From positions 23,622,001 to 23,686,000 of the forward strand of contig NC_135667.1 in assembly GCF_964188315.1 (NCBI RefSeq): DNA of 64,000 bases. Direction: 5' to 3'. The notes beneath the pieces are model-generated. The model was not told the DNA's origin, ran no database searches, and was given only the letters and a program-made list of their open reading frames with translations. The stretch is from Podarcis muralis. Its lineage: Eukaryota. Below are positions 7,397 to 64,000 of this stretch, piece by piece (position 1 is the first letter of the stretch; each line of letters begins with the position of its first letter). Position numbers and translations under genes: made by a program.

Positions 7397-9814
7397 TTAG
7401 CATTCCTCCTGGCCTGTGCAGTCTTGATGCCTATCTGGTGAGGTGGGAAGCAGGCAGGGGTCAAAGAGCGGCTCTCCGACCCAAAGGCGTGCGGCAAAGA
7501 TGTGCCGGCAGGGCAGCTGGTGAGCCATGTAGATGGAACAGCTGCAAGTGGCCAGGTCCTGGCTCACCAGGAAAGAGCAGGTGCTTCCCTCCAAGAGGTA
7601 GCCCTCAGGCGTGTCCTTGAGCTCATAGTGCGCATGGGGCACCAGGTCCAGTTCCTCGGCCACCAGATCAGCGCTGTCGGGCAGGCAGGCGGTGTGGTAC
7701 AGCTCAGCCACAGGTGCCACGTTGAACGTCGAGGTCTCCACATGCAGGGCTTGGAGATCTATCAGGCCCTGAACGCAGGTGGCCAACACCATAGGAGGGG
7801 TGAGTGCTGTCAGCAGCTTACGGCGGTGAGTGCTAAGGTGGTCGAGGAAGGAGCATTCCCGGTTCTTCTCAAAGGCCCAGCACTCTACCCACATGCCCTT
7901 GTGAGGGTGCCAGTGCTCCAGGAAGTACTGCAAAAAAGAAAGCGGGGCGACATCTTCCAGGTCGCTCAGGTACTGGCTGTAGACCCGCGGCGAGTCAGCA
8001 TTCGCCAGGTTGAGCAACAGGTTGCGGATCTGGTCCTCCTTCGGCACAGCCAGCTCGCAAGCTCTGCGGTAGAGGGCCTCCAAGACCTGCAGGCGGCAGA
8101 TCTGCACCCGGGCACATGGCAGGACCTCCTCCACCGCGTCCAGCCCTGTGACCCCAGCCCCTACTGTGACCACCTTCACCCTCAACTTGATGTCCGGGGC
8201 ACTCTGCACCAGCGAAGCCACAATGAATATAAGGAGGTCGGGCAGCCCCTGGCGTGCCAGGCAGTAGGCCACCTCACGCCCACGGCCATTGGCATCTTGG
8301 CAAAGCACAGTGTAGAGCTCAAAGTCCGCATCAAGGCAGGCAGCGCGTTCCAAGAAGAGGCGAGCCGGGAAATGTTGCACAAGCTTGCGCATGTGTGAGG
8401 TAGCCAGGAAGATGCTGTTGAGGACAGCCACATCCTCCTGGAAGACAAGTTTGACTTTGGCCCCTGGATCTGCCTTGAAGAGAGCGTCCAGAACAGCCAG
8501 GAGGTCGCACATGCCCTTGTCTTTGGCTTTGCTGTAGTCCTCCAGGTTCCAGATAAGGTCAGGTGCCAGAAAGCGCTTGGAGATGCTGTTGGTGATGCGG
8601 ATGGGCAGCCCTAGGCTGGCCCTCAGCTGGTGCCGCTTGAAGTGATGGGCAAACTCCAGCTCCGACAGGCGGTGGTTGTGCTCCAGGTTGGCCTCAATCA
8701 CCACCAAGCGGTCCTTCTTGGGGCCCAGGCGCAGAGTGATGGAGGCTGGGCAGTCAATCTTCTCACTGCTGCAAAGGAGGAGATGGTGGGGGGAAAGGGT
8801 GTTTGTTTAGTAAGAAGCGACAGCACTATTGACACTGGACTCCAATGGATGCTGGTAGGAACTGCTATCACTGCCAATCCCTCCCTGTCAGGGGCCCGTC
8901 CCCGCCCCCCCATGGAGGAAATGTTTCACATGGAGTGGGGGAAAATAAAACTATCTCAAGTATATTGTGGATTTTTCAAAAGAAATCTTCCATGGCTTCA
9001 TTAATTTTTTCCCCCCAATGTATTGTAGTTTAGCCACCCAGAGTGGCTGTGGCAACCCAGCCAGATGGACGGCGTATAAATATTATTATTATTATGACTA
9101 TGACTATTATTAGCAGTGCTTATGTCAAAAAAGGCAAAGTTGGCCAACCAATTCTGTAGGTTTTATTCAGAAAAGCATGCCTTAATTCTGCACTATACAC
9201 TTGGGATTTTGAATTCAGGAGTAATTACAGCACAAGGAATATCTTGTTTGGTGAGGACCTATGAAGAAATCCTAGGGTTTTGCTTTCTATAGAGCAGGGA
9301 TAAGCAGCCTGTGCCCCACCAGAGGTTGCTGGACTACAGCTCCCATCATCTTTGCCCACTGGCCATGCTGATTTGGGCTGGTGAAACCCAAAAACATCTG
9401 GAGGCTAAGCTATAGAGGAACAATCAGTGTCTCTTTGAGGGTCTCAATGATACTGGGGGAATGGGAATCGGAGAGAATTTTAGCTTGTAAACATCTCGGA
9501 GCATGGGGCCTGTGCAGCAACATGCATGCAGAAGGCATTATATAATCAAACACGCGATGGACTTACAGGCGGTTGCGTTGCACCGTGCTCTGCCCCACAT
9601 AAGTCCCGCTGTGCTTGCAGATGAGACGCACAAAACGGAAGCGGAGTGTCTCGGCGAGGCTGGGCTGATAGTGTGGCGGGTTCTGGCGCAGTGAGATCAG
9701 TGGCTTCAGGCTGGCGATGATGAAGAGCACTTTGTGCTTTTCGCACCAGTCGTCAAAGAACGTGCTGAACTGGTGCCAGGTGTGAAACTCCCGGCCCAGG
9801 CCGAGGTCCCCCAT
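7397..9814 (-). CDS. ZSWIM9: ZSWIM9-like protein (FAR1/WRKY-GCM1-type N-terminal domain, MULE transposase-derived core, C-terminal SWIM finger), about 539 aa; CDS join(9567-9814, 7397-8768)
   Basis: Kozak gccATGG just after a strong acceptor (9819). CT|gtaag ... ttgcag|C keeps the frame into the 7397-8707 ORF. Segments resembling mammalian ZSWIM9 as I recall it: EFHTWHQFSTFFDDWC, PIRITNSISKRF, DPGAKVKLVFQED, QSAPDIKLRV, VLPCARVQICR. SWIM motif CSC...LPCRH. Orthologue versus paralogue is not resolved. Confidence 0.85.
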
Positions 9815-17400: not shown

Positions 17401-18535
17401 TTTTTTTTTAACAAAAAACTAGCATAAGCCTTACGAGATTTGTCCAATACTGGATGAAATATTACAAGCTCAAAAGAAAAGTTTATAGCCTTCAGAGCAT
17501 GGCACATCAGCACCCACATAGCAACCACTACTCTTAGGGTTTTATATGCATTCTTGTGCACAAATGGCAAAGAAAAGCTTTTTAATAAATATAAAATTGA
17601 TATTCCCCAGGGTTCTGTGCAAGCATTTCGATCTTGCGGTAGACCTCAGCAACATGATCTAAAACTTCCTCAGCTTCCTAAAACTTCCAGTTACTACTAC
17701 AAAAAGTTCTCACCTGCTGATCCCACCTCTCGCCTTCCTGCTGCTTCAGCAGGAAATGCTCTGCCAGGGTCACGGCCTGAACGCAGGTCTTGGGACGATA
17801 TTCCTGAACCCAGTCCTGCATTTCCTCTGGCAGGATGGTCAGGAACTGCTCCAGGACCAACAGCTCCACAATCTGCTCCTTGGTGCGGCTTTCTGGCTCC
17901 AGCCAGCGGTGGCAGAGCCCCCGCAGGCGGGCGCAGACCTCGCGAGGGCCCTCGGCCTCCTGGTAGCGGAAGTGCCTGAAGTTCTGGCGCTGCCTCTCCA
18001 GACTGACGGCATCCTCTCGCAAGATGGCGGCCTTCACTTTCCCATAATCCCCGCTCTCTCTGGGATCCAAGTTATTGTAGGCCTGGAGCGCGGCTCCGTT
18101 GAGGGCGGGCATGAGACGCGTCACCCACTGTTCCTTCGGCCACTTGCAGGCCTCAGCCACGTCCTCAAAGGTAGCCAGGTAGGTCTCAACATCTTCCGTC
18201 AATGTGAGTTCTGGCACTTGCAGGTTCCTCCACGCAGGCGACTGAACTGGCGTGAGATCTGGAGTTGGCAATTCCTGTTGCCCCTGAATCTCCCACCGCT
18301 GGGGTGTTTCCAGCCGTTCGCTCCTGGTCTGCTGAGGTGTTATGAGCCTAAGGCCGCCTCCAGCTGTCCCAACCTGCACAATACGGTAGGTTTTTACTGA
18401 ACCCTCTGATATCCCCAGTGCGTCAGAACCCATTGGGTCTGGCTCCTTCTCCATTTTCACCGACGGCTGCACTCTTTGCTCCAGTGGTGCTGGACACTGG
18501 AGATACTGAGCTACCATATTCCGCTTGGCTGCCAT
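14410..18535 (-). CDS. Extended-SCAN / degenerate-KRAB / C2H2 zinc-finger protein, about 474 aa; CDS join(17714-18535, 16533-16662, 14410-14882)
   Basis: SCAN domain ([19 protein letters not shown]...[26 protein letters not shown]) ending CAG|gtgag in phase 0. A 130-nt KRAB-A-like exon ([28 protein letters not shown]) ends in phase 1. The last exon has two intact fingers with an HTGVKP linker and two degenerate ones. The frame is continuous across the junctions; an alternative ATG lies at 18547 and the exon acceptor at 18661. Confidence 0.88.
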
Positions 18536-19039
18536 TTTCCTCCTCATTTTTGAATCGGTTTCTGAGTTTATGTGGCCTTTCACTAGGGTTTCCAACACCC
18601 AATTCGCCACCAGGAGAGCCTATCAGCTGCGGAAAACTCCTATGGCTGTCTTGATGCCAACCTGGAAGGGTGATAATTACACAAAAAATGGTAAGAATTA
18701 GAACCATTTAAATTGTAATTTCAGCAACATTATTAACAAGACAGAAGGCTTCAATCAATCCATAGGTCAGCAAGGGCTCTAAAAATCTACCAGTTTGCTA
18801 GTCTCATGAAAGAGATTTCTTATGCTTGAAATATCATATTAGCTAGAATGAAGGCACAGAAAGTTCAGGCAAAACAAACAAGCAACAACAATCTGATTCT
18901 GTCTTCTGAAAAGGGTGTGTAACAGTGGTATTTGAAAATAAGCAACACATTTCTTGCAAACCTCTTAGAGGTTTTACTACAGTCAATCAGTATATGTTTT
19001 GTAAAATAAGCAAGCACACATTTTGGCTCCTTCTGCATC

Positions 19040-33599: not shown

Positions 33600-34138
33600 T
33601 CAAACAATGGAATATTGATTTTTCCAGTGATCTATCTCTGCAGTTACGGGGCCCATGGACAAGACAGGATAAAGCTTGTCAGGACAGGAGGTACAGAAAG
33701 TGTGCAATTTACTTCTTGTGTGGACGTCATAAAAAGATAGGGTTCTGGAACTTTTCTCCTTATTTAGGAACATTCCTATATTTGTAAGATTTCCAGTCAC
33801 TTCTAGATGGGTCCTTGGCTTTGTCTGAGCCCAGTAATCTTTCCCACCATCAAGTCCTACGACCCAGTAGCCATTCTCAGGACACAGTTTGGCCTTCCCT
33901 TTTCTATGAACAGAGTGAGAAGCAACCCCTAAGTCCCAATTTTCTTTTCGGCCAACTTCCACTTCCCAGTATCATTTGTCTTCAGAAAAACTGTGTGCTG
34001 CCACAATGAAGGTATGGAGGGTTAACATATCACTGTAGTAAAAAAGCTTAGAAATATTTCCTGTGTCTGAAACACTTTTCCTAACTCTGGACACTTCCGG
34101 TTGTGAGGGAGCTGACTCGGGGTCGAAGACCACGTCAA
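33600..34138 (-). pseudogene. B30.2 (PRY/SPRY) exon of the butyrophilin-like gene, disabled
   Basis: Acceptor ttgcag| then DVVFDPESA...SEDK*YWEVEVGRKENWDLGVA...GYWVVGL...LSFYDV...LYPV, with an in-frame TGA at 33972-33974 just before YWEVEVG. Confidence 0.85.
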
Positions 34139-34599
34139 CTGCAAAGTAAAGAAAATGGATTTCATTAATTGGACAACGACACCACGTTCAACAAGCTGCC
34201 ATTGTACCATGTGATAAATAGAAATTTCAATTCAACATCCCTTGGCTAGGGATTTTCACTCAGAAGTAATCCGGTGGAGGTCAATGGGACATATTTCCTC
34301 ACGATCTCCAAAGTGCCTTCCAGGAAGGTGTCTGCTGACTGGAAAAAGGATGCGCCAGAGCAGAGGAAGGTGCTTTTGAGATTGTAAAAGGCTTGAGCCA
34401 AAGTTCCTCTGGGAGGCCGTTCCTGTAGGGCAGCAGTGGTGGAAGCATCAAGATGTGTATGGGAGCAAGCAAGCAAGCAAGTGGGTGGGAGGGCAAATGG
34501 TGCTGGCAAGATGGTGGCTGGGGGAAAAGAGGTGGCAGTACAGCATACCGGTGCATATCGCCTCAAAAAAAGCACTGATGACAAATAAAAGAATCATCC

Positions 34600-34830
34600 A
34601 TCTCTGAGGGCCTTCTGGCGGTTCCCTCATTGCGAGAAGTGAGGTTACAGGGAACCAGGCAGAAGGCCTTCTCGGTAGTGGCGACTGCCCTGTGGAATGT
34701 CCTCCCATCAGATATTAAGGAAATAAACAACTATCTGACTTTTAGAAGACATCTGAAAGCAGCCCTGTATAGGGAAGATTTTTATCTTTGATCTTTTCTC
34801 ACGTTTAGTGTTCTGTTGGGAGCTGGCCAT
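34600..34830 (+). mobile_element. L2 LINE 3' fragment
   Basis: Closely similar to 41285-41480. Confidence 0.75.
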
Positions 34831-35723
34831 TATTATTATTATTTATTATTTATTACTAGTACTACTTTTATGTATATTTCTCCTAATTTTTAGAATCCTA
34901 TCCACTGAATTGGAGAGAACAACCATGTGGTTTTAAACAGCTAAAGTGGTGCTTCAGTTTTAGGTTAAGAACGGACCTCTGGAACAAATTAAGTACTTAA
35001 CTCGAGGTACCACTGTAAGATTGCACCAACCTGCATCCAGCAATTCACTATTTCACTGTTTAACATAGTTGTTTGTTTGTTTTTGGAAGTCTGGACATTT
35101 TCTTCAGTGCTGCAGAGGAATCTCCTCCATTTTCATTTTTTTAAAAAACAAAACAAAAGCAAATTCACTTGCAGCTTTTGATGGCAAGTAAAAACATTTC
35201 CTAGATCTTTATTGCATCCTTTTGGGACTGGAAGGATGATTACAAAGGAAGATTTGGGTTGTGCTTTACAGGATCATCTGAATAAGCGGCACAACACAAG
35301 GTGTGCAGAACTTTATGATTCCCTCCCACCACTAAAGCCCATTGTCTTTGCTTGTGTACTGTGCTACTTATATGTACAAGTATGTCTATTGCAGAAGCGT
35401 CATCTTCCAAAGAACATGGAGGAAGCCCTGACATGAAGCTTGCTCTGTACCTGGCTCCATATTTGGCCTCAGCAGGGGAAGGGGGGGCAGCCCCCTAAAA
35501 AAAAGATTGGGAGAACTCACCGAGCCTTAGCCCCCTGGAGTTGGAGCGTTTGGTTTATTGACTATTTTATTTAGCAGACAAGTGGTTTTCCATATTTTTT
35601 GTTTTGTTTTGTTATGGTGTTCTGTTTTGTGGTATCTCCCAATGTACCTCTGCAAATACTCAATAAAGTCTAAAAAAAGAAAGAAAAAAGTATGTTGTTC
35701 TCACGTCTGAAGGAACAGGCCTC

Positions 35724-37854
35724 TCAGAACTCTGTGAATAAAGGAATGAAGAAAAGTCATTCTTAGTAAGTAGTTCTTTTCACATAACAACCAGCAATGT
35801 TGGCACAAGCTATCCAGCGAGCTGGTCCACAGCACTTCTCCACACACCACAGAGGTAATGATGATGATGATTATATATATATAGTGAATATGATGAAGGC
35901 AAGCTGTACAACTGAGGGGAATCTAGGTAGTGGCAGGTGGTGATCAAGGGAAGAACAAAATGCTCAGGCCAAGTGATCTTTAAAACTCTGTGCCAGTATC
36001 ATCATTGTGGCTTAATCAAAGCCCCTTCACTAAATGAATGCCGACTACTGAGAACCTTAACCCTCCAAACTGATACCTACTTTTTTCATGTGTTTTGCCA
36101 CAAACAAAGAGAAATGGAATATATGGCTATATTTTAATTGGATCAAATGTTTTTTTGAAAGTTGAAACATTTTATAAGGCAAACCTTTTTCTTCCTGCAA
36201 TTTTCTGTTTTCTTGTAATACTGTAGTCCTAAAAAAGAGAAGTGTATATGGTTTTCATTCTAAGCAATATCACCCGCCAATCAGGTCCCTTGAGGTGAGT
36301 GGCATAGATATGACAGGGGGATTTCTACAAATAACCAAATACCATTCAGAGTGGTATAGGCGTTATTTGTATATGTCTTTCGATGAACTGACTGGAAGAC
36401 TATAGACTCAGCTAAATTGGTAAAGAAAAAGCTATTTGTATGCATAGTATATGCAATATAACACTGTGACACCAGATGGCGATGTAGAGTCCTGTTTTTG
36501 CTAAGCTGATTTCTCATTAAAAAGTTTACAATGCACTTAACTAAAACTTGAAGCTTCTTTGATGCATCTAGATCCAGCCTGTGAGTCAAGGGGGGTGGGG
36601 CAGTGTGTGTGTATGAATTCAAATTCAAAAGTTTCCTTTTGTTGTTTGTTAATGTTGTTAATATTGTTTTGTGGATTATGAGTGCTGTCATGCTTTGTGA
36701 ATTTTAGATTATGACTTCTTTGTGGTTCTGCTGCTTAATCTGTTTTGTTAGTTATTTTGTTGCTTTGTTAGCTGTTATAGAAAGTGGTTGTTTTACTGAT
36801 GAGTTGTAAATTTTGTGTGATTTATGTTGTGATTGTGATGTTCTATTACGTTATTGTTAGTAAGCCACTTTGTGACTCATGGGAGTGAAAAGCAGCATAG
36901 AAATAGAATGAATACATGCATGAATTACATCATCTAACATTTAATTCAAAATCCAAAAGGTACGTGAAAAACAAAGGTAACTCTGTTAGCGCATCAAAAG
37001 AAACATCCACATCTACAACTGGGCAAAACTTTCATTAGGACCAGCCAAAAAGAAATGGCAACAGCTCCAGGGTTTCTTTTGTCACCTCAGCTGTGGACCA
37101 GAGCAGTAGACAAGGAAGTCCAAGTAAAGTAGTTACATGGCAGTTAAGAGATCTGAATAAGAAGATGCAGGAGATACTGGGGTGTCGGTCCTTAATAAGT
37201 AAAGACAGAACACCATGGAAACTGTGCATGGAGTGGGGCACTCAATCAGACTTAGCTTATTCTCTCACTACCACTTTGAATGTGTATATGACGAAGGCAA
37301 GCTATACAGCTGAGGGGAATCTAGGTAGTGGCAAGTGGTGATCAAGGGAAGAACAAAATGCTTAGGCCAAGTGATCTTTAAAACTCTGTGCCAGTATCAT
37401 CACTGTGGCTTAATCAAAGGTCCTTCACTAAATGAATGCCCACTACTGAGCACCTTAACCCTCCAAACTGATACCTACTTCTTTCATGTGTTTTTTCCAC
37501 AAAGAAAGAGAAATGGAATATGTGGTTATATTTTAATTGGATCAAATGGTTGTTTTAAAAAAAGAAACATTTTATAAGACATACCTTTTTCCTCCTGCAA
37601 TTTTCTGTTTTCTTTTAATCGTTCTAAAAAGAAAACTGCAAATAGTGAAAAGCATATGGTTTTCATTCTAAGCAATATGGCCTGCAATCCCCTAATAGAG
37701 AGAATGATCCAGGTCCCTTAGGGTTAGTGGCATGCCTAACAGGAGGGATTTGCCCGACAGAGAGGGTTGCTTCCCCTGCTGACAGCAATCATTAGCTGCA
37801 GACACAGGACAGGCAGACATCTAGTCTGTCTTTGAATCTCCTATACTATAAGTG

Positions 37855-37890
<36 letters not shown>

Positions 37891-40800
37891 GTTCTGTTTT
37901 GTGGAATCTCCTATTGTACCACTGCAGTAACTTAATAAAGGTTAAAAAGAAAGAAAGTATACCTTGTTTTTATGCGTTTCAAAGTACAACTATGCAGAAC
38001 ACAACGTGTTTCGTCACAAACAAAAGGAAAATGAAATATAGGGTTATATTTTAATCGGATCAAATGGTTGTTTGAAAGCGGAAACATTTTATAAGGCATA
38101 CCTTTTTTCTTCCTGCAATGTTCTGTTTTCTGGAAATAGTCCTAAAGAACAGAAATGCATATGGTTTTCATTCTAAGCAATATGGCCCACCAATCTCCTA
38201 ACAGAGGGAATGATCCAGGTCTTTCAGGGTGAGTGGCCTGCCTACAGCAGGGATTTGACTGACTGAGGGACTTTCCACAAATACCATTAGGAGTGGCATA
38301 GTTACTGGGTGTACACAAGCACCATCCTGCTTTACGTGTGGAGGGGGTTGATGGTGTGATTCTGGAGACATTGTTTCACACCACTTCCCTCTGATCGGTA
38401 GAGCTGATCAAGTCTCCATTCATCACAGGGCATTGTTTCTATTCAGTCCCTAACCCACAAATCAGTTACAGGGAGGTGCTTGGAACACCTACCCGCACCC
38501 CAGATAATGTCCCGGGTTTAACGTGGGGCTCAGGCTGGCAGAAAATGCCTCTTGGTTTAGCAAAGGGGTAATCTTGATGGTTCATATTTCTCCTTTTAAA
38601 TACAAAAATTGAATATGTGGCCGTGTTTTCAGTTGATCAAATGGTTGTTTACAAGCAAACAGATTTTACAAGACATACCTTCTTCTTCTTCCTTTATTTC
38701 CCCTTTTTCTTCTTTGGCACTCTGCTCTTCATTCCGTGAGAGAGTTTCCTTTTCTCTGGCACCTTAAGATGTGGGGCAGGGGTCGGGGGGAATCACAAGG
38801 AAGTCCAATTTAGCTTGGCATCTATGGGCACCACCAGAATAGAATACCCTAATGGATTTTTTTATTTGCAACCAACTATGGAATATAGAGTTGTAGGACT
38901 CTACGGTAAAAGTCCCAAGGCAAGGATGTAGGAGTGGATAAATTCTGTGGATTGGTGTAGTCTACTTGTGCCTGTTCAGATATTGCTGGACTCTAGCCTC
39001 AGCCAGCATCATCAGGGATGATGGGAATTGTAATCCAGCTACAGTACTGTTAAAATCACAGATTAGTCATCTGTGCTATAAGCCATTTGAGGGGGATTGT
39101 ACCCTCTGTTGGATTGTTTTTGTACATCTGCAGACCTTGTGCAGAGGCAGATCTAGGGGAGCATGACTGGTTCGGCCACACTGGGCACAGAGCTTCTGGG
39201 ACACTGCAGCACGTGACACAACTATGAAGTCCTACAGAAGGCCGGATTTGGGCGTCACACAGGATACCACTGAAATGTGAAAAACCAAGGTCCACCATTG
39301 CCTTGTAATTACTCTGAGCATGTAGATAAATCTCTCTTGGGTCTCTGCTTTGGCTGCAATCTTATCTGTGCTCATAGGAGCCAACTCCTAGGGGGCTGAG
39401 GGCTCTTTGCCCTCCAATAAAATATTTGAGGGGGCTGCCCCCCAAAATTGATGGGCATTGCCATGCAAATGGTGTGTGTACACTGCGTCTTGTGATCGAT
39501 TATGTGGAGAGGGGCTTACCTGGGGCCCCCAATATTTTATGCAAGTTGCCCCCACTGTCTGCACTCCACTCCTCACATGAATTCACTATTAGAGAGAGTA
39601 ATTTATACGTTACCTTTGTATATGACTGCCCAAACAGTGACTGCAAGAGCGAGAAGAGCGAGAAGAAGAAAGACAAACATCACCCAAAAGGCAGTGCAGG
39701 AGCAATAATTCTCTGAGGTACTGTTGCCTGAAAGAAAGAAATGGCAGAGAATAAGGGATGCCTTTTTACATGCTATGATAGTCAGACAATCAGGCAGTAT
39801 GATTAATCAACTGAAAACCTTTCCATTGATTAAAAATAGGTTCCTAATTGATCAGGCAGCAGTTATTTAAAAAATGTTAACCATTTTAAATGGAACCACT
39901 TGAGTTCTGAGATTTTTGGAGTCATTGACATCTATCCAGGGAATCAGTATCAGTCATGGCAGCAGGAACTCATGGAGGACAATGGAGAGGACTCTGCTAA
40001 CACATTATTCAGAAGTTCAGCCAGGTCCTTTCTTTGGTGATTAGATTATGATGTCGGAAAGAGAGTAGTGGGAAATATAGTTGTAAGGGGGCCTGTTTTC
40101 CTTTGTTACGCCCCCTCCTATGCCCACATGAACCAGCCAAAAAAGATAAAATACATTGTGCCACTTTATAAGCATAGATGCAAATTTGAAACTAACTGCT
40201 AAAATTTAATCAGAAATAGTATCCAATTCACCCTAGTGAATAGATGACCCAGGTTCCTGCTCAGTTTGTTGAGCAGTCACTAACTGTTAATGATCAAATT
40301 CAGGGCCACTGCTTTCCCTCTTATGGCTCTTCATCTTTAAACCAGTCTTGGACTGGGAAGCTTTTCAAAGAGAGGGTGCCTTCAAATAGGACTGTCCTTT
40401 GTGAAGGAGAGGTCATCTCTGGTGATTACTGTAGCTTTAAATTTTACACCACAAATGCAAAAGTTAGGCCTGAGCTATTTCCTCTGTGCCCGTCCTACTT
40501 TGTGATTCATACCTTTTGAAGATTCAACAACCAGAACAGTTTGGGTCTGAGCACCCCAGTCTTTGGTCTTGACAATGCAGCTGTAGCTTCCTTCATCAGA
40601 CTTTTTGGCCATTTTCAGCATCAAGGAAACATTTCCAGTGTCCAGTCCCTCTGTGGCAAACACTGCCCTGGACTCATAGCCTTGCCCAAATGTTTCCTGG
40701 CTAGTGAAAGCTGTGAACTGGTAGATGTTCTCCGTGTTGTCATCTACAGTTTTTTTCCACTGAACTTCCACGTTTTGTGGCAGAGCCCCAGAAGAGCTCT

Positions 40801-41548
40801 GGCATGGCAAGATGACATCTTGCCCCACATACCCAATGACAAATAGGGCAGAGTTCAGTTCAAAATGGTCTGGGAAAAAAATCACAAATATTAAAGGCAA
40901 CAACAGCACCACCATGTCTGAGGTTGAAACGTTTCCCCAAATGGTACATCTCGGGGTTTGGATTCCCTACAGAAGGGGCAAATATTTTCCCTCCACATGA
41001 CTTTGTGTACATGGACGTGAGCAGTGATATTGGGGAATATTCTGATTGAGAGGAACAGGCAGCCTTTACAAGGATCTCACTGGATGAATGGGCCAGACTT
41101 GTCTACAGACGTTTGGTGCACTGGCACTGAATACCATTTTAAAGGTTCATTTTGAGGTTATTTGCTGATGGCTACACTATCTGATTATCACTATTGGGGA
41201 AGGTATAAATTAAACAGCCTCGGCCCAGTATACCTTATGGAGTGTCTTCACCCCCATCATTTAGCCTGGACACTGAGGTCCAGCTCTGAGGGCCTTCTGG
41301 CGGTTCCCTCACTGCAAGAAGTGAAGTTACAGGAAACCAGGCAGAGGGCCTTCTTGTTAGTGGCGCCCGCCCTGTGGAACGCCCTCTTGTGAGATGTCAA
41401 GGAAATAAACAACTCTCTGACTTTTAGAGGACATTTGAAGTCAGCCCTGTTTAGGGAAGTTTTTAATGTTTGATGTTTTATCGTGTTTTAAATATTCTGT
41501 TGGGTGCCGCTCAGAGTGGCTGGGGAAATCCAACCAGATGGGCAGGGA

Positions 41549-41602
<54 letters not shown>

Positions 41603-42759
41603 TTATTAGAGTTCCTGTATTTACAGTAAACTCTCTTCAGCTGGCTTTTGGCCTGTTTGCAGTCTTTGTCAAACCAGCTGGAAGATCCCAACGATCTTTG
41701 TGAGCCACTACTCTTGATCTCAGTTCTCAAGTGGTCTTGCAATCTGTCAGTCAAGGTCTTAAATAAGTTCATAGCCTCAGCAGCAGAGGTAGCTGAGATG
41801 ATAGAAGCAGGAAAAGCCTTTAAATCATCTGTATGAAGGAGGTGAGTGTGTGTGGCTCAATAGTGGAGAATGCAGGTCTGAGATCCAATCCTCAGCATTG
41901 GCAGGTAGAGCTGGGAGAGAACCCTGTCTGAAATTCTGGAGAGCTGCTGCCAATCAGTGCAAACAATATTGAGCTAGATGGATCAGTAGTCTGAATTCAG
42001 TACAGTGGTACCTCGGGTTACATACGCTTCAGGTTACAGACTCCGCTAACCCAGAAATATTGCCTCGGGTTAAGAACTTTGCTTCAGGATGAGAACAGAA
42101 ATGGGTGGCGGCGGCAGCAGTGGGAGGCCCCATTAGCTAAAGTGGTGCTTCAGGTTAAGAACAGTTTCAGGTTCAGAATGGACCTCCAGAACGAATTAAG
42201 TTCTTAACCCGAGGTACCACTGTATAAGGTTAGGCTGCTATCAAACAAAACTAGTTTGCTCACTGAACTCTTCTCATGCCAAAGCCTCATCTGTTACTGA
42301 GACATCCTCCTGCTTAACAGTGACTGCCCCACCTTGTCTTTGAACATTTCATTGCTTACTCCTACTTGAAATGAGTGTAAGATGTAGGGAGGCAAAAAGA
42401 ATTAATTAGCTGTTCTGCAGGGCCACTGCAGCTCCTAGTTTCCCAATGAGAATCAGTCGTATAATGAGAACACAATCAAGATGGAGGCAGACACCTTTCC
42501 AAATTCTGCTATGGCTTCTCCACTGTTAAGCAGGAAAGGAGAAATTGCAAGGATCCACCAATAAGAACCCCACGCGCACATTGATTTCTGTGTCACAACA
42601 TGCCTAAAAGTCCTTCTTGGCTAAGTCCATGGCAACATAACATTTTGCTGCTGCTGCTTCTCTACACTTTTTACCTGATGAAGGGATCAGTGCCAGGACT
42701 ACAATGTAGAAAGAACCAAGAATGAGATGGACAATTTCTTGAGGTTTATAGACCCCCAT
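35724..42759 (-). CDS. Butyrophilin-like single-IgV membrane protein: signal 42675-42759, IgV 40513-40869, TM 39614-39727, cytoplasmic exons 38679-38762, 38102-38141, 37585-37623, 36185-36228, stop in exon 35705-35731; predicted 256 aa
   Basis: Signal MGVYKPQEIVHLILGSFYIVVLALIPSS. IgV with LPC...QW...SDEGSYSC. TM FWVMFVFLLLALLALAVTVWAVIY, then E/K-rich coiled-coil exons. All junctions are GT-AG, with phase-1 Ig/TM exons typical of BTN genes. The cytoplasmic exon set is my hand reconstruction. Confidence 0.72.
35885..38290. repeat. Tandem duplications of an exon-bearing unit (about 35885-36280, 37280-37680, partial 38010-38290)
   Basis: High identity by eye between copies, each holding one ENRKLQEEK-type exon. 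Confidence 0.85.
41205..41550 (+). mobile_element. L2 LINE 3' end with (AAT)n tail
   Basis: LNSLGPVYL...LRSSSEGLLAVP...RAFLLVAPALWNAL, then the 3' UTR and an AAT repeat; related fragments near 34600-34830, 9030-9100 and 30955-31030. Confidence 0.8.
42003..42222. mobile_element. CAGTGGTACCTC-type MITE (TA TSD)
   Basis: TA-CAGTGGTACCTCGGGTT...AACCCGAGGTACCACTG-TA. Confidence 0.88.
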
Positions 42760-51707: not shown

Positions 51708-52759
51708 TTAGGTGCTTTTACTTGGCCTCTTCATTAGCTGTTCCCTGTTATTCATCTCTGGCTTCATGACAATAATATAGCATTTGGGGAAGAAGATGCA
51801 GCCCAGCAGCCCAGCACTGGAACCTAAGATAGAGAAAATCTCCACAGCCACCATGTATTTCCCTTTGGTGCTCAAGTAAGAGGGAACAAAGGACAGCCAA
51901 ACACTGCAAAACACCAACATGCTGAAAGTGATGAATTTGGCTTCATTGAAACTGTCAGGCAGTTTCCTGGCTAGGAAAGCCACCACCAAACTGACAATGG
52001 CCAGGAAACCCAGGTACCCAAGCACACAATAAAACAGAATAGGTGCCCCTTCATTACATTCAAGTACAATTTCTTCACTCATAGAGTGCATATCGACATC
52101 TGGGAATGGTGGGGAGGTTGCCAGCCACACAGTACAGATGCCTGCTTGGATAAGGGAGCAAGAAAGAACAATGAAGTTGGCCAGTCTTTTCCCTACCCAT
52201 TTCCTCATACTGGATCCTGGTTTGGTGGCCATGAAAGCCAGAACCACAGTGATGGTTTTGGCCAGCACACAGGAAACAGCCACTGAGAAGATGATGCCAA
52301 AAGCTGTTTGTCGGAGGAGGCATGTCACCGTATGAGGCTGTCCAATGAAGAGCAATGCACAGAGGAAGCAGAGCAGGAGGGAGACGAGGAGGGTGTAGGT
52401 GAGGTTTCGGTTGTTGGCTATGACTATGGGTGTGTCTTGGTGCTTCACAAATGTTGTTAGTACCAGCACTGTGATTAAAGAAAAGGAAAGAGAAAAAATG
52501 GCTAAATTGATTCCCAAAGGTTCTTCATATGACAAAAAGCTTATATCCTTAGGAATGCATGAATCATGTTTTTTGCCTGGATAGTGGTCTTCTGGGCATT
52601 TAATGCAGTCAGCCATGTCTGAAACAAAGGAAAAGTTGTGGATTTGGTTTTTCAAATTTTCATTTCATACCCTATTTTAGAAAAAATAATGGTTATCTTT
52701 TGTCAAATATTCATTTTCTTTTAAAAATAAAAAATCAGAGGTTCTCAAAGAGGCTTTCC

Positions 52760-55800: not shown

Positions 55801-58800
55801 TTTTAATTATAGATTTCTTGGTTTACAAAGTATGTGCAATGTCTCTTTTTTCAAGTTACATTTTCTACAGATCAGTTTCATTTGTTGAGACATTGGTGTT
55901 ACCTTAGGAAGAAAAGGGAAAAAGAGGTTTGGGGGGGGAAAATAGTGAGTGGGGGTGGGATCGGGTGGCAATGCTTCTATTCTGCTTAATGTATGTGTGG
56001 CGGTTTCTGTCAGAGTCGCTTGTGCGGGTTTTCTTTACTATTCACTTGTACTCCTTTGGTGGTGAGTGAGGTTGGGGTTGGCCTAGGGTGTGGTTGTTGT
56101 TTGTAGTTGGCTGTGGTGATCTTTGTTTTCACGTGTGAGTGGGGTGGGTGAATGTTTTTGAATCAGGTTAGCCCTATTGATTTGTATACTGTTAGTGGAT
56201 TCCTTTCATTGTATTGTTGGGCTGTGTTTGTGATAAAGGGGAAGCATACTGGGGTGAAGGTGTCTTCTTCTATTTGTCCTCGTATCCATTTCAGTTTATT
56301 GTTTAGTTTTTCTAATAAGGCTGTTTCCCATACTATTTTGTACCATTGGTCCATGCTTACTCATGACAGATCTCTCCAGTGTCTGGCTATGATGTTTCTG
56401 GCTGCTGAGAGTAGGTGGATTATGAGCTCTTTATGATGTGAGTGGGCATTATCTTGGAAGATTTTTAATAGGGCCAGTTATGGGGTGACTTCTAATACTT
56501 GCTTAGTTATTTTGCATATTTCTTGTATGATTGTTGTCCACAATAGTTGGATTTTGGGTCATTCCCACCACATGTGGAGGCATGTGCCTGTGGAGGTGCA
56601 CTATCTCCAGCATTTTGGTGAGGTTCCTAGGCTTATTAGCACTAGTTTCCTTTGTGTTAGGTACTACTTCTGCTATAACTATAAATACCAGTTGCTGGCA
56701 ATTACCAGTGGAGAGACCACTGTTGCCCTCAAGTTCTCCTTGTGGGCTTCTCATATGCACCTGCCTGACTGTTGTGAGACTAGAGTGCTAGACTAAATGG
56801 GCCTTTGGTCTGATCCAGCAGATGTATCCTTATCATAGCCATCTTCAAATATCTAAAGGGCTGTTGCATGGAAAATGGAACAAGCTTGTTTTCTCCTGCT
56901 CTGGAGGCGTGGACCCAAATTGATTGCTTCAAGTTTCAAGAAAGGAGATTCCAACTAAACACCAGGAAGAACTTTCTGACAGTAAGAGCTGTTCAACAGT
57001 GGAACTGACTCCTTTGGGAGGTTATGGACTCTCCCTTCATTGGAGGTTTTTTTAAGTCATCTGTCAGGGATGCTTTAGCTAAGATTCCTGCATTACAGTA
57101 TCCCCACCACAGCTATAGGCTAATAAAAACAGAAGACAGGAAAGATGCTCTTCAATACGTGAATTATTGTGGCCATCCCACCTTGCTTTTGGGAAGAGAA
57201 AGGAAGCTCATATTGAATACCCCTTAAGCATCCTGATTTGAGCAGGACATCCCAGATTACAGAAGCCATCTCAGTTTGGACTCCTGCAAGAGCTCAGGAA
57301 CAAAAAAACAAGCATTCCAATTTTGATCCATGGGATGTTGGAGGGTATGATATTTTGAGTGAATGAAATAACCATGAAGAAACGCTAGTCTACAAACAGT
57401 AGAGTGTGTTGTTCCCACCTGTAAATACTAGATAATTCATGATATTCTTACCTCCCATAGTTGTTCATTTGGAAGTGTCAGGCTCCCTCTATCCACCATT
57501 GCTTTGTGTTTTGATTTTAGAGAATGCATGGCTTGCAAAGCATGTGCTATAGCATAGACTGCATTGTAGATATTGTAACTGTGACCAGTCAAGCTCATTT
57601 CAAAAAACCCACCAGGAAGGTCGCTCAGGTTCTCCTCTCCGGTGCAGATTTCTGCTTCCATTTCACCCACCATAGAATTTGGGAATTTACATTTGAATGC
57701 ATTTTGCCAGAACTCCTTGATAAAACCATCTTCTTTTGCCCTGAAAACATTTCTTCCCAGAAGAAATTGTTGAAATCTCGGGAGTATATTTGAATGACTT
57801 GCGAAGGCTATAGCACCCTGAAAGACTTCGAAATCCCATTGAGTGTGAAAGTTAAAAGCTATAATATCAATTTGGGCTGACATAATCCATACTTTACCTT
57901 TAGGATTAACAGTCGCTGGGATGTATAGGAATGTTCTCCAAAGGATTATGGCCTGGATTTCTCCATAAAACACCAGTACATTCGCTTTTCTCTTCATAAT
58001 AACTTCATATATTCCCTGAAGCAAGTCTGCTGTATTCAAAGCTTCAGAGATAAAAGTGAACCTAGGGAGTCTGTCGATGAAGTCAAAACAAATACCCTTC
58101 TGTAAAAATAACGGGAGTGCAATTTGCAAAAATCTTTCTCCATCATCATCATCCACAGCAAGGATGCTAATCCAGATCCACCTGAAATGCAGAAGTAACT
58201 GCAGAATCCCCATATATTGATGGGCTTCCTTGGGAGCCATCTGGAAAGTGGGGAAAACTTGGGTTTTCTCACTCATTGCTGAAGTAGAGCCATACGAAAG
58301 CTAATGATGAAAGTGAGGAGGAGAGAAAAAGGAAAAAGTGATGAAGAGTCAGAAAAACATTAAGAATGCAAAATGAAATCTCATTCTGTGTGTGCTGCTA
58401 ATAATAGAGTTGTTATCTGCAACGTTTTGTTCAATATTGGTTTGAATCAGTTTTGGTTAAGCAAAAATGGCTATGATAGCATCCAGATTCCTACTTTCAT
58501 CAGCTGTCCAGGAGGAAGAGAGGTGTGTGTACAAGCCTGAAGTTCACCTAGGCTTGTTCATCTTATGAGGAACAGAAGGGAGAACATGGGACTTGCAGTC
58601 TATCAAGTTAGACAGGGGAGCTGGTCACTGACTTATCAGTTATATTTTTATTTCTTTGATAGTAATTGTGTCTCAGTTTACATCTATACATGTAAATTGG
58701 CCCATGCACACTAATTCAAATCAGTGTCATCTTTTGTTTTTTTCCCTTTGGGGGGGGCAATGAATAAATAAGAAGAACAGAGTTTCCCATGTAGGAATGA

Positions 58801-63492: not shown

Positions 63493-64000
63493 CTAGAAGT
63501 GTTTCTTTACAAAGTTTGAAAGATTTATCTTTAATGACTTGGGACCACTGTTTTCTGAAGCATTGCTTTTCTCTGATGGCTTTGGACCACTGTTTTCTGA
63601 AGCACTGCCATAAGCTAAAAATGGGTACAAGTTGTCCCTGGATTTAATGGGGATAGAATCTATAAGGAAATAGGCATCTCTGGAGTTATAAAATGAGATT
63701 TCCCATTTTTCTTGATCCAGTAACAAACCAATCACTGAATAAGACACATTTTGCTTCTTTTCAATCTCTTTCTCACATGGACTGGGAAAGAATTTTCCTT
63801 GGCTGCTTTTGAGAGCCCAGCAGCCTTCCTGAAAGGACTTAGCAACCTTTTTCTTTCGGAATTTGTCCTTTTCAGCCTGAGTCAGCACCCCCAGCTCCCA
63901 GTCCAACCTCTCTCCCACCTCCACCTCCCAGTAGTGTTTCCCAGCAGCATAACCTTCTTTCCCCACAAAAATCTGAGTTCCCATAGCAGTTTCTTCTTTC
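63493..64000 (-). CDS. Terminal B30.2/SPRY exon of a TRIM or butyrophilin gene (the rest lies beyond the right edge)
   Basis: GKHYWEVEVGERLDWELGV...GCWAL...VIGLLLDQEKWEISFYN...LYPFL; open to a stop at 63493. Confidence 0.85.
   Translation of the reverse strand, partial: KEETAMGTQIFVGKEGYAAGKHYWEVEVGERLDWELGVLTQAEKDKFRKKKVAKSFQEGCWALKSSQGKFFPSPCEKEIEKKQNVSYSVIGLLLDQEKWEISFYNSRDAYFLIDSIPIKSRDNLYPFLAYGSASENSGPKPSEKSNASENSGPKSLKINLSNFVKKHF

Follow-up and report, generated by a model that had tools for sequence, protein, structure and literature searches.

We analyzed a 64,000-nucleotide (nt) stretch of the Podarcis muralis genome (NCBI RefSeq assembly GCF_964188315.1, contig NC_135667.1, positions 23,622,001 to 23,686,000 of the forward strand), referred to here as the window, and found that a butyrophilin-family gene on its minus strand (33600-42759) has frameshifts and stop codons only downstream of its transmembrane (TM) exon. 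Both frameshifts and the first stop codon are shared with the related Podarcis lilfordi, and constraint differs from exon to exon, with an IgV exon that changes slowly at the protein level and a B30.2 exon that changes at the rate of the introns. With moderate confidence, we favor the reading that this is a live gene, predicted to encode an IgV-TM protein that lacks the B30.2 domain; we infer from genome sequence that this protein is expressed and anchored in the membrane, with its C-terminus chosen among several candidates. A first-pass annotation, made by a model from the letters alone, had proposed that the gene is not a dead pseudogene and has lost its B30.2 domain. That part gained comparative support in our analysis, while the exact 256-amino-acid (aa) isoform it described, and selection for the compensation between the two frameshifts, were not established.

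Results

Organization of the gene

We cut nine proposed exons from the window sequence by script. On the minus strand they measure 85, 357, 114, 84, 40, 39, 44, 27, and 539 nt, with canonical AG acceptors and GT donors throughout; these lengths, the two TGA codons described below, and the 256-aa reading all proved to be as the first-pass annotation had reported them. Exon 1 (42675-42759) carries the ATG and the signal peptide and ends in phase 1. Exon 2 (40513-40869) encodes the IgV domain (Pfam V-set, 3.4e-11) with its hallmarks in place, namely the Cys pair, the Trp, and a DEGSYSC motif, and exon 3 (39614-39727) encodes a stalk with two Cys residues followed by the TM helix. The charged juxtamembrane segment lies in exon 4 (38679-38762), which has an alternative GT donor 26 nt downstream. 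Three short repeat units follow, namely unit A (exon 5, 38102-38141), unit B (exon 6, 37585-37623), and unit C (exon 7, 36185-36228), and these lead to the 27-nt exon 8 (35705-35731) and to exon 9 (33600-34138), a B30.2 (PRY-SPRY) exon that cannot be translated as a domain (Pfam SPRY, 1.2e-18).

The nearest solved structures in the PDB for the IgV exon were CD276 (6.5e-17), BTNL2 (1.3e-8), MOG (about 1e-6), and BTN3A. The B30.2 exon, read past its stop, gave the SPRY match above, and its best PDB match was the B30.2 domain of BTN3A1 (3.9e-23), BTN3A1 and BTN3A3 being the most similar solved B30.2 domains. No IgC exon was found: the TM exon comes directly after the IgV exon, the 785-nt intron between them contained no Ig-like open reading frame (ORF) or remnant, and the same IgC-less layout occurs at the Lacerta agilis and P. 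lilfordi loci (L001 and L003, respectively). Short cytoplasmic exons (84, 40, 39, 44, and 27 nt) separate the TM exon from B30.2, and in the intact L. agilis form all of them enter in phase 1. Given the IgV and SPRY matches and the missing IgC exon, the gene is, by its sequence matches, a butyrophilin-family gene with a single Ig domain. We also screened the B30.2 exons of all three lacertids for PRY (window 33603-34136, L001 14783-15376, and L003 20299-20832), and none of them gave a Pfam PRY match, the open-frame exon of L. agilis included; SPRY was matched only.

An ATG-initiated frame within intron 1 (40475-40915, minus strand) runs a hydrophobic leader, MVVLLLPLIFVIFF, through the acceptor into the IgV exon. 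This frame is probably a chance product of the pyrimidine tract, and a P. muralis protein model has L at the position of that M.

Lesions and their sharing among lacertids

The first frame change lies in exon 5, which corresponds to a 39-nt exon lengthened by one A, the sixth of its A-run (a six-T run on the plus strand, 38103-38108); the run has five letters in units B and C and in the corresponding unit of L. agilis. Exon 7 corresponds to a 39-nt exon plus a 5-nt insertion, which is also the source of a second AG that would give a 36-nt form starting from 36220. The shifts of +1 (40-nt exon) and +2 (44-nt exon) jointly return the frame, and exon 6 is read between them in a non-native frame in the 256-aa model. 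This shifted frame of the 39-nt exon is stop-free, and phase 0 meets a TAA at codon 3; its openness counts for little as evidence, since of the two wrong frames one is open in any case. The spliced frame then ends at codon 257, a TGA at 35726-35724, 19 nt ahead of the donor of the 27-nt exon. The B30.2 exon has a TGA of its own (33974-33972), placed at the Y/H position with which the YWEVEV motif begins. In the same exon, a 4-nt insertion near 33617-33620 alters the last strand.

Upon searching with words from the IgV exon, we obtained the L. agilis model XP_033024367.1 ("CD276 antigen homolog, partial"), which is 98% identical, and one unspliced Logan contig; the same clusters include the P. 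muralis model A0A670JI37 and the P. lilfordi model CAI5790516.1. Exact look-ups of the P. muralis model and of the window IgV ORF found neither on record. The L. agilis and P. lilfordi loci are both colinear with the window, with intron divergence of 3.8% for P. lilfordi and about 6-9% for L. agilis, and the L. agilis locus has the same exon order and splice sites as the window.

In P. lilfordi, an independent assembly, the 40-nt and 44-nt exons are identical to the window base for base, and the TGA of the 27-nt exon and the 4-nt B30.2 insertion are present as well. At the site of the B30.2 TGA, P. lilfordi reads TAT, and the P. muralis model A0A670JI37 has Y there with the same altered C-terminal end. 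L. agilis, by contrast with the window, has one 39-nt exon where the window has three repeat exons, reads TCA and TAT at the stop sites of the 27-nt exon and of B30.2, respectively, and lacks the 4-nt insertion; an open frame runs from IgV on through B30.2, and its exon 4 measures 81 nt versus 84 nt. Because the lesions recur identically in an independent assembly of another species, they are not assembly errors and were shared by descent. The comparison thus places both frameshifts and the TGA of the 27-nt exon as shared by descent within Podarcis, and the B30.2 TGA as private to the lineage of the window, as far as the aligned loci read.

An assembly artefact, whether from miscounting of the homopolymer in the 40-nt exon or from wrong base calls at the stops, is accordingly very improbable. 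What could speak for it is that the +1 sits in a six-A run and that the B30.2 TGA occurs in this assembly only. However, the six-T run is present, and P. lilfordi has the 40-nt and 44-nt exons and the 27-nt exon TGA unchanged, so that assembly error is ruled out for the 40-nt exon and the 27-nt exon TGA, and the 40-nt length in the first-pass annotation is genuine. The B30.2 TGA differs from TAT by two adjacent base changes, which is atypical for sequencing error.

Upstream of these lesions, exons 1-3 are free of stops, frameshifts, and splice-site loss in every species seen. L. agilis has the same hydrophobic core in its TM helix, VFLLLALLALAVTVW, and only the edges of the helix vary. An in-frame TAA past the TM exon is kept in all three species.

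Constraint on the IgV exon and drift downstream

We quantified divergence between the window and P. lilfordi, a pair in which both members carry the TGA of the 27-nt exon. The introns set a baseline of 246 differences in 6468 positions (3.8%). Against this baseline, the IgV exon differed at only 4 of 354 positions (p=0.005 versus introns), the tail exons (84 to 27 nt) at 7 of 234, about the intron rate, and the B30.2 exon at 15 of 537, with a ratio of nonsynonymous to synonymous differences per site (pN/pS) of 0.92 and nonsynonymous changes (10/416) at the intron rate. Read in the frame of the 256-aa model, the tail exons gave a pN/pS of 1.39, at or above the neutral rate. Exon 1 showed four differences from P. 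lilfordi, all four nonsynonymous, and exon 6 likewise showed four, all nonsynonymous in the shifted frame.

To these pairwise counts we added a comparison across three Podarcis-like lineages, related to one another in a near-polytomy, that set the IgV exon against its own flanking sequence (about 540 nt). The flanks, taken as baseline, were variable at 27 of 544 positions, and the IgV exon at 5 of 357 (p=0.005). Nonsynonymous positions varied at 2 of 275 (p=0.001), about sevenfold slower than the flanks, and synonymous positions at 3 of 79, which equals the flank rate. As the synonymous changes run at the flank rate, the IgV exon has a normal mutation rate and the selection acts on the protein. 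The IgV exon is thus, as these counts indicate, under purifying selection after the truncation, and it is the only exon for which this was demonstrated.

Measured against L. agilis, omega was 0.19 for the IgV exon, 1.07 for the TM exon, 0.87 for the 84-nt exon, and 0.82 for B30.2. Nonsynonymous differences in B30.2 (28 of 402) equal the intron rate (7.1%), and the divergence of this exon exceeds what constraint along the L. agilis lineage would allow (P about 0.01-0.02 for omega of 0.2-0.3). The B30.2 exon of L. agilis therefore also seems to evolve neutrally despite its open frame, to judge by these rates, and constraint on B30.2 may have gone before the visible lesions arose. By the same measures, the B30.2 and cytoplasmic-tail exons drift neutrally in the window gene. 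The contrast between a constrained IgV and a neutral B30.2 in related lacertids had been predicted by the first-pass annotation, and it came out as predicted.

These data also bear on the possibility that the gene is a dead unitary pseudogene, with low IgV divergence caused by chance, a locally low rate, or gene conversion. It has in its favor at least five disabling changes in the gene and annotation models that are irregular in three species (partial, frame-hopping, or with the TM exon skipped), in addition to the expression record treated below. Yet the lesions are confined to the part of the gene beyond the TM exon (P = 0.07 under uniform placement along the coding sequence), the IgV hallmarks are intact, and the roughly sevenfold slowing of nonsynonymous change, at a synonymous rate equal to that of the flanks, is seen on lineages that already carry a stop. 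We consider a dead pseudogene improbable.

Candidate products and the C-terminus

Using canonical sites only, we computed five splice or read-through forms of the gene. The first, the model of the first-pass annotation, encodes 256 aa. Use of the 36-nt acceptor in exon 7 would give 261 aa, with the second codon of the last exon as its stop. Read-through of the TM-exon donor would meet the conserved TAA (39603-39605) and yield a 188-aa product, as in the NCBI L. agilis model. If splicing used the alternative exon 4 donor 26 nt downstream, which the P. lilfordi annotation does, the product would reach 310 aa, and skipping of the 27-nt exon would give 309 aa, ending at the B30.2 TGA. Residues 1-186, spanning signal peptide, IgV, and TM helix, are common to all five forms, and B30.2 is in none of them.

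By an established rule, stops that lie less than 50-55 nt upstream of the last junction usually escape nonsense-mediated decay (NMD). No spliced form has a stop more than 50-55 nt upstream of its last used junction, and the NMD status of the 188-aa read-through form hinges on its 3' end. The first-pass annotation had singled out the stop in the 27-nt exon as NMD-safe; its distance of 19 nt from the last junction bears this out, but since all spliced forms would be spared by the same rule, an NMD-safe stop is no special mark of the 256-aa model.

That model, in its narrower version, holds that the frameshift pair was kept by selection, that the stop is placed where it escapes NMD, and that the B30.2 exon has become 3' untranslated region. 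Its frame arithmetic is correct, P. lilfordi matches both frameshifting exons at 100% identity, and the downstream splice sites are canonical in both species, the donor of exon 7 reading GTTTGC in the window versus GTATGC in P. lilfordi. However, identity over both frameshifting exons (84 nt) would arise between the species by chance with P = 0.04-0.07, and retention of the downstream splice sites (22 bases) with P about 0.13, and therefore selection for the compensating pair is not established. The tail ratio of 1.39 and the run of nonsynonymous changes in the 39-nt exon stand against it too, as do the 36-nt acceptor, the TM read-through, and the alternative donor, which also lead to B30.2-less products with stops that are not NMD-prone. 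We regard the narrower 256-aa model as possible but unlikely. Because the tail evolves at or above the neutral rate, the functional coiled coil that the first-pass annotation had placed there is unsupported.

A different product would be a nearly tailless IgV-TM protein of 188 aa, made by read-through of a weak TM donor or by polyadenylation within intron 3, with the downstream exons as relics that possibly date from before the Lacerta-Podarcis split. The NCBI model XP_033024367.1 is built in this way, joining IgV to TM and ending at the TAA 11 nt beyond the TM donor, a TAA that all three species have. Compared with L. agilis, all sequence past the TM core diverges at the intron rate; the divergence of B30.2 fits neutrality on both lineages better than L. 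agilis constraint (P = 0.01-0.02 for omega of 0.2-0.3); the PRY match is absent in all three species; and an AATAAA lies in intron 3 at 38866. This AATAAA, however, sits 750 nt into the intron and is a candidate signal only, the L. agilis model is a partial one that may have come from extending an ORF and not from transcripts, and the L. agilis frame from IgV to B30.2 is wholly open. We hold the 188-aa product, too, to be a tentative proposal, one that we would not expect to prove correct.

Expression record and points against a live gene

Several observations weigh against a live gene. Among the runs holding the stretch, none is on record as RNA. A spliced, transcript-derived product was not found in a collection of 15 billion proteins, for which the queries were the IgV exon, the L. 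agilis IgV-TM protein, and exons searched singly, an exon-by-exon design that could miss products matching only in joined form. Few changes underlie the selection result (2 nonsynonymous, 3 synonymous), omega for the whole TM exon is about 1 versus L. agilis, and the IgV exon may have been converted by a functional paralogue elsewhere in the genome. The lack of a run on record as RNA among those with the stretch and the lack of a transcript-derived protein among the collection matches are, equally, what a pseudogene would lead one to expect.

The matches from the two collection searches fell into only two clusters and, for this gene, comprised no more than a UniRef model, a pair of annotation models, and a single unspliced Logan contig; the B30.2 (SPRY) piece, used as a query of the same collection, gave zero matches. 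A search for sequencing runs turned up five raw RNA runs of the species and four others that we guessed to be RNA. These four contained 0.36-0.43 of the sampled IgV-TM words, compared with an exon share of about 0.34-0.38; their contig totals of 100-140 Mb are transcriptome-like. As none of the four is on record as RNA, this is only a hint.

History of the repeat exons

The repeat units A, B, and C differ from each other by 15-19%, and unit A differs from the L. agilis unit by roughly 10%. Because the units have diverged further from one another than unit A has from its L. agilis counterpart, the triplication predates the Lacerta-Podarcis split, and L. agilis collapsed three units to one. When set against the window (38141-36185), the L. 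agilis unit (L001 12652-12690) is unit A-like upstream and unit C-like downstream. Such an A/C mosaic is the pattern expected of an unequal crossover that deletes two units, and it leaves an in-frame 39-nt exon.

In intron 1, the L. agilis locus has about 8.7 kb of extra sequence (L001 555-9249), which pushes its exon 1 outside the fetched locus. This extra sequence may explain why the NCBI L. agilis model is 5'-partial.

Surroundings of the gene

Intron 1 of the window gene contains a long (TTA)n microsatellite (41550-41610), and short interspersed element (SINE)-like copies with the motif CAGTGGTACCTCGGGTTAAG occur at about 42040-42230 in intron 1 and at 34950-35020 in intron 8. A tblastn search for further paralogues in the window found only a distant SPRY exon (63598-63969). 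This second SPRY (B30.2) exon (63493-63984, minus strand) is open over 163 aa and about 29% identical to the B30.2 of the gene, and we assigned it to a different gene, the 5' part of which extends past the end of the window. A V2R-type receptor, vomeronasal or taste-like, has exons just upstream of the gene (51708-52655 and 57437-58276, minus strand; 7tm_3 1.4e-87, ANF_receptor 1.6e-16). The window further holds a SCAN-domain ORF (17678-18610, minus strand; 2.6e-39) and a 436-aa ORF (7397-8707, minus strand) with DUF5575/ZSWIM RNaseH-like and SWIM domains, from a transposase-derived gene or a mobile element.

Discussion

We propose a stepwise history for this gene. Before the split between the lineages of the window and of P. 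lilfordi, a TCA-to-TGA change would have arisen in the 27-nt exon, frameshifting insertions would have entered two of the three tandem 39-nt exons, and a 4-nt insertion would have altered the end of the B30.2 exon; later, a second stop, inside B30.2, would have appeared in the lineage of the window alone. The product would be a membrane-anchored IgV protein with its function in the ectodomain, and the tail and the B30.2 exon would drift. Since the L. agilis orthologue has an open B30.2 frame, the loss of B30.2 is recent and arose within the lacertids.

An earlier loss can also be read from the data. B30.2 would then have been irrelevant before the Lacerta-Podarcis split, the protein would for tens of millions of years have acted as an ectodomain-only surface ligand, the visible stops and frameshifts would have followed late, as scars and not as the cause, and the +1/+2 pair would have been selected to keep the stop in the NMD-safe 27-nt exon. 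Taken jointly, these elements make a doubtful proposition. [quoted passage not shown] An IgV domain under selection without a B30.2 sensor points to an ectodomain-driven function that is independent of both B30.2 and the gamma-delta receptor.

The predicted live, B30.2-less gene would illustrate, step by step and with dates, how the family can give rise to members without B30.2 (BTN3A2, BG, and MOG among them), and it permits a side-by-side comparison of the intact-framed L. agilis gene with the decaying gene of Podarcis. We judge its importance as moderate, because the route is already known in primates and expression of the gene is a prediction.

Comparison with known systems

Unlike a typical butyrophilin, the window gene has neither an IgC domain nor a translatable B30.2 domain, and unlike a unitary pseudogene it combines lesions restricted to the exons beyond TM with a constrained IgV. 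The first-pass annotation had framed the gene as BG- or MOG-like. We find this to be an analogy only.

Chicken BG genes are thought to descend from butyrophilin-like ancestors, and their very long tails are encoded by many 21-nt heptad exons under selection (PMC4046983, PMC8813856). The window gene resembles them in its single IgV, its TM helix, its charged B30.2-less tail, and a possible interchain Cys in the stalk. It differs in that its tail is about 70 aa long, is encoded by exons of 84, 40, 39, 44, and 27 nt, and drifts neutrally, and in that its B30.2 exon is still present. With MOG, the window gene shares the status of an IgV-TM superfamily member without B30.2, and the match between its IgV and MOG scores about 1e-6. 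MOG itself serves a conserved neural role and contains a second hydrophobic segment. By contrast, the tail of the window gene is highly charged and has no second hydrophobic stretch, and CD276 and BTNL2 are closer matches to its IgV.

Among known genes, primate BTN3A2 comes closest: its B30.2 is removed by "a stop codon in exon 7", which is a heptad exon, and the gene stays in use (PMC6790196). In the same way, the window gene has a stop in a short cytoplasmic exon (TGA 35726-35724) upstream of a retained B30.2 exon, and its ectodomain, as would be expected of a BTN3A2-type gene, appears from the substitution counts to be under purifying selection after truncation. The two genes are not orthologous, and BTN3A2 has IgV and IgC, whereas the window gene has IgV only and additionally carries frameshifts and a second stop inside B30.2. 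Expression of BTN3A2 and its partnership with BTN3A1 are documented, while the window gene is known from genome sequence alone. We suggest that the window gene works as BTN3A2 does, in that a stop in a short cytoplasmic exon would yield a B30.2-less member of the family; it would add another B30.2-less butyrophilin, by a route known from primates.

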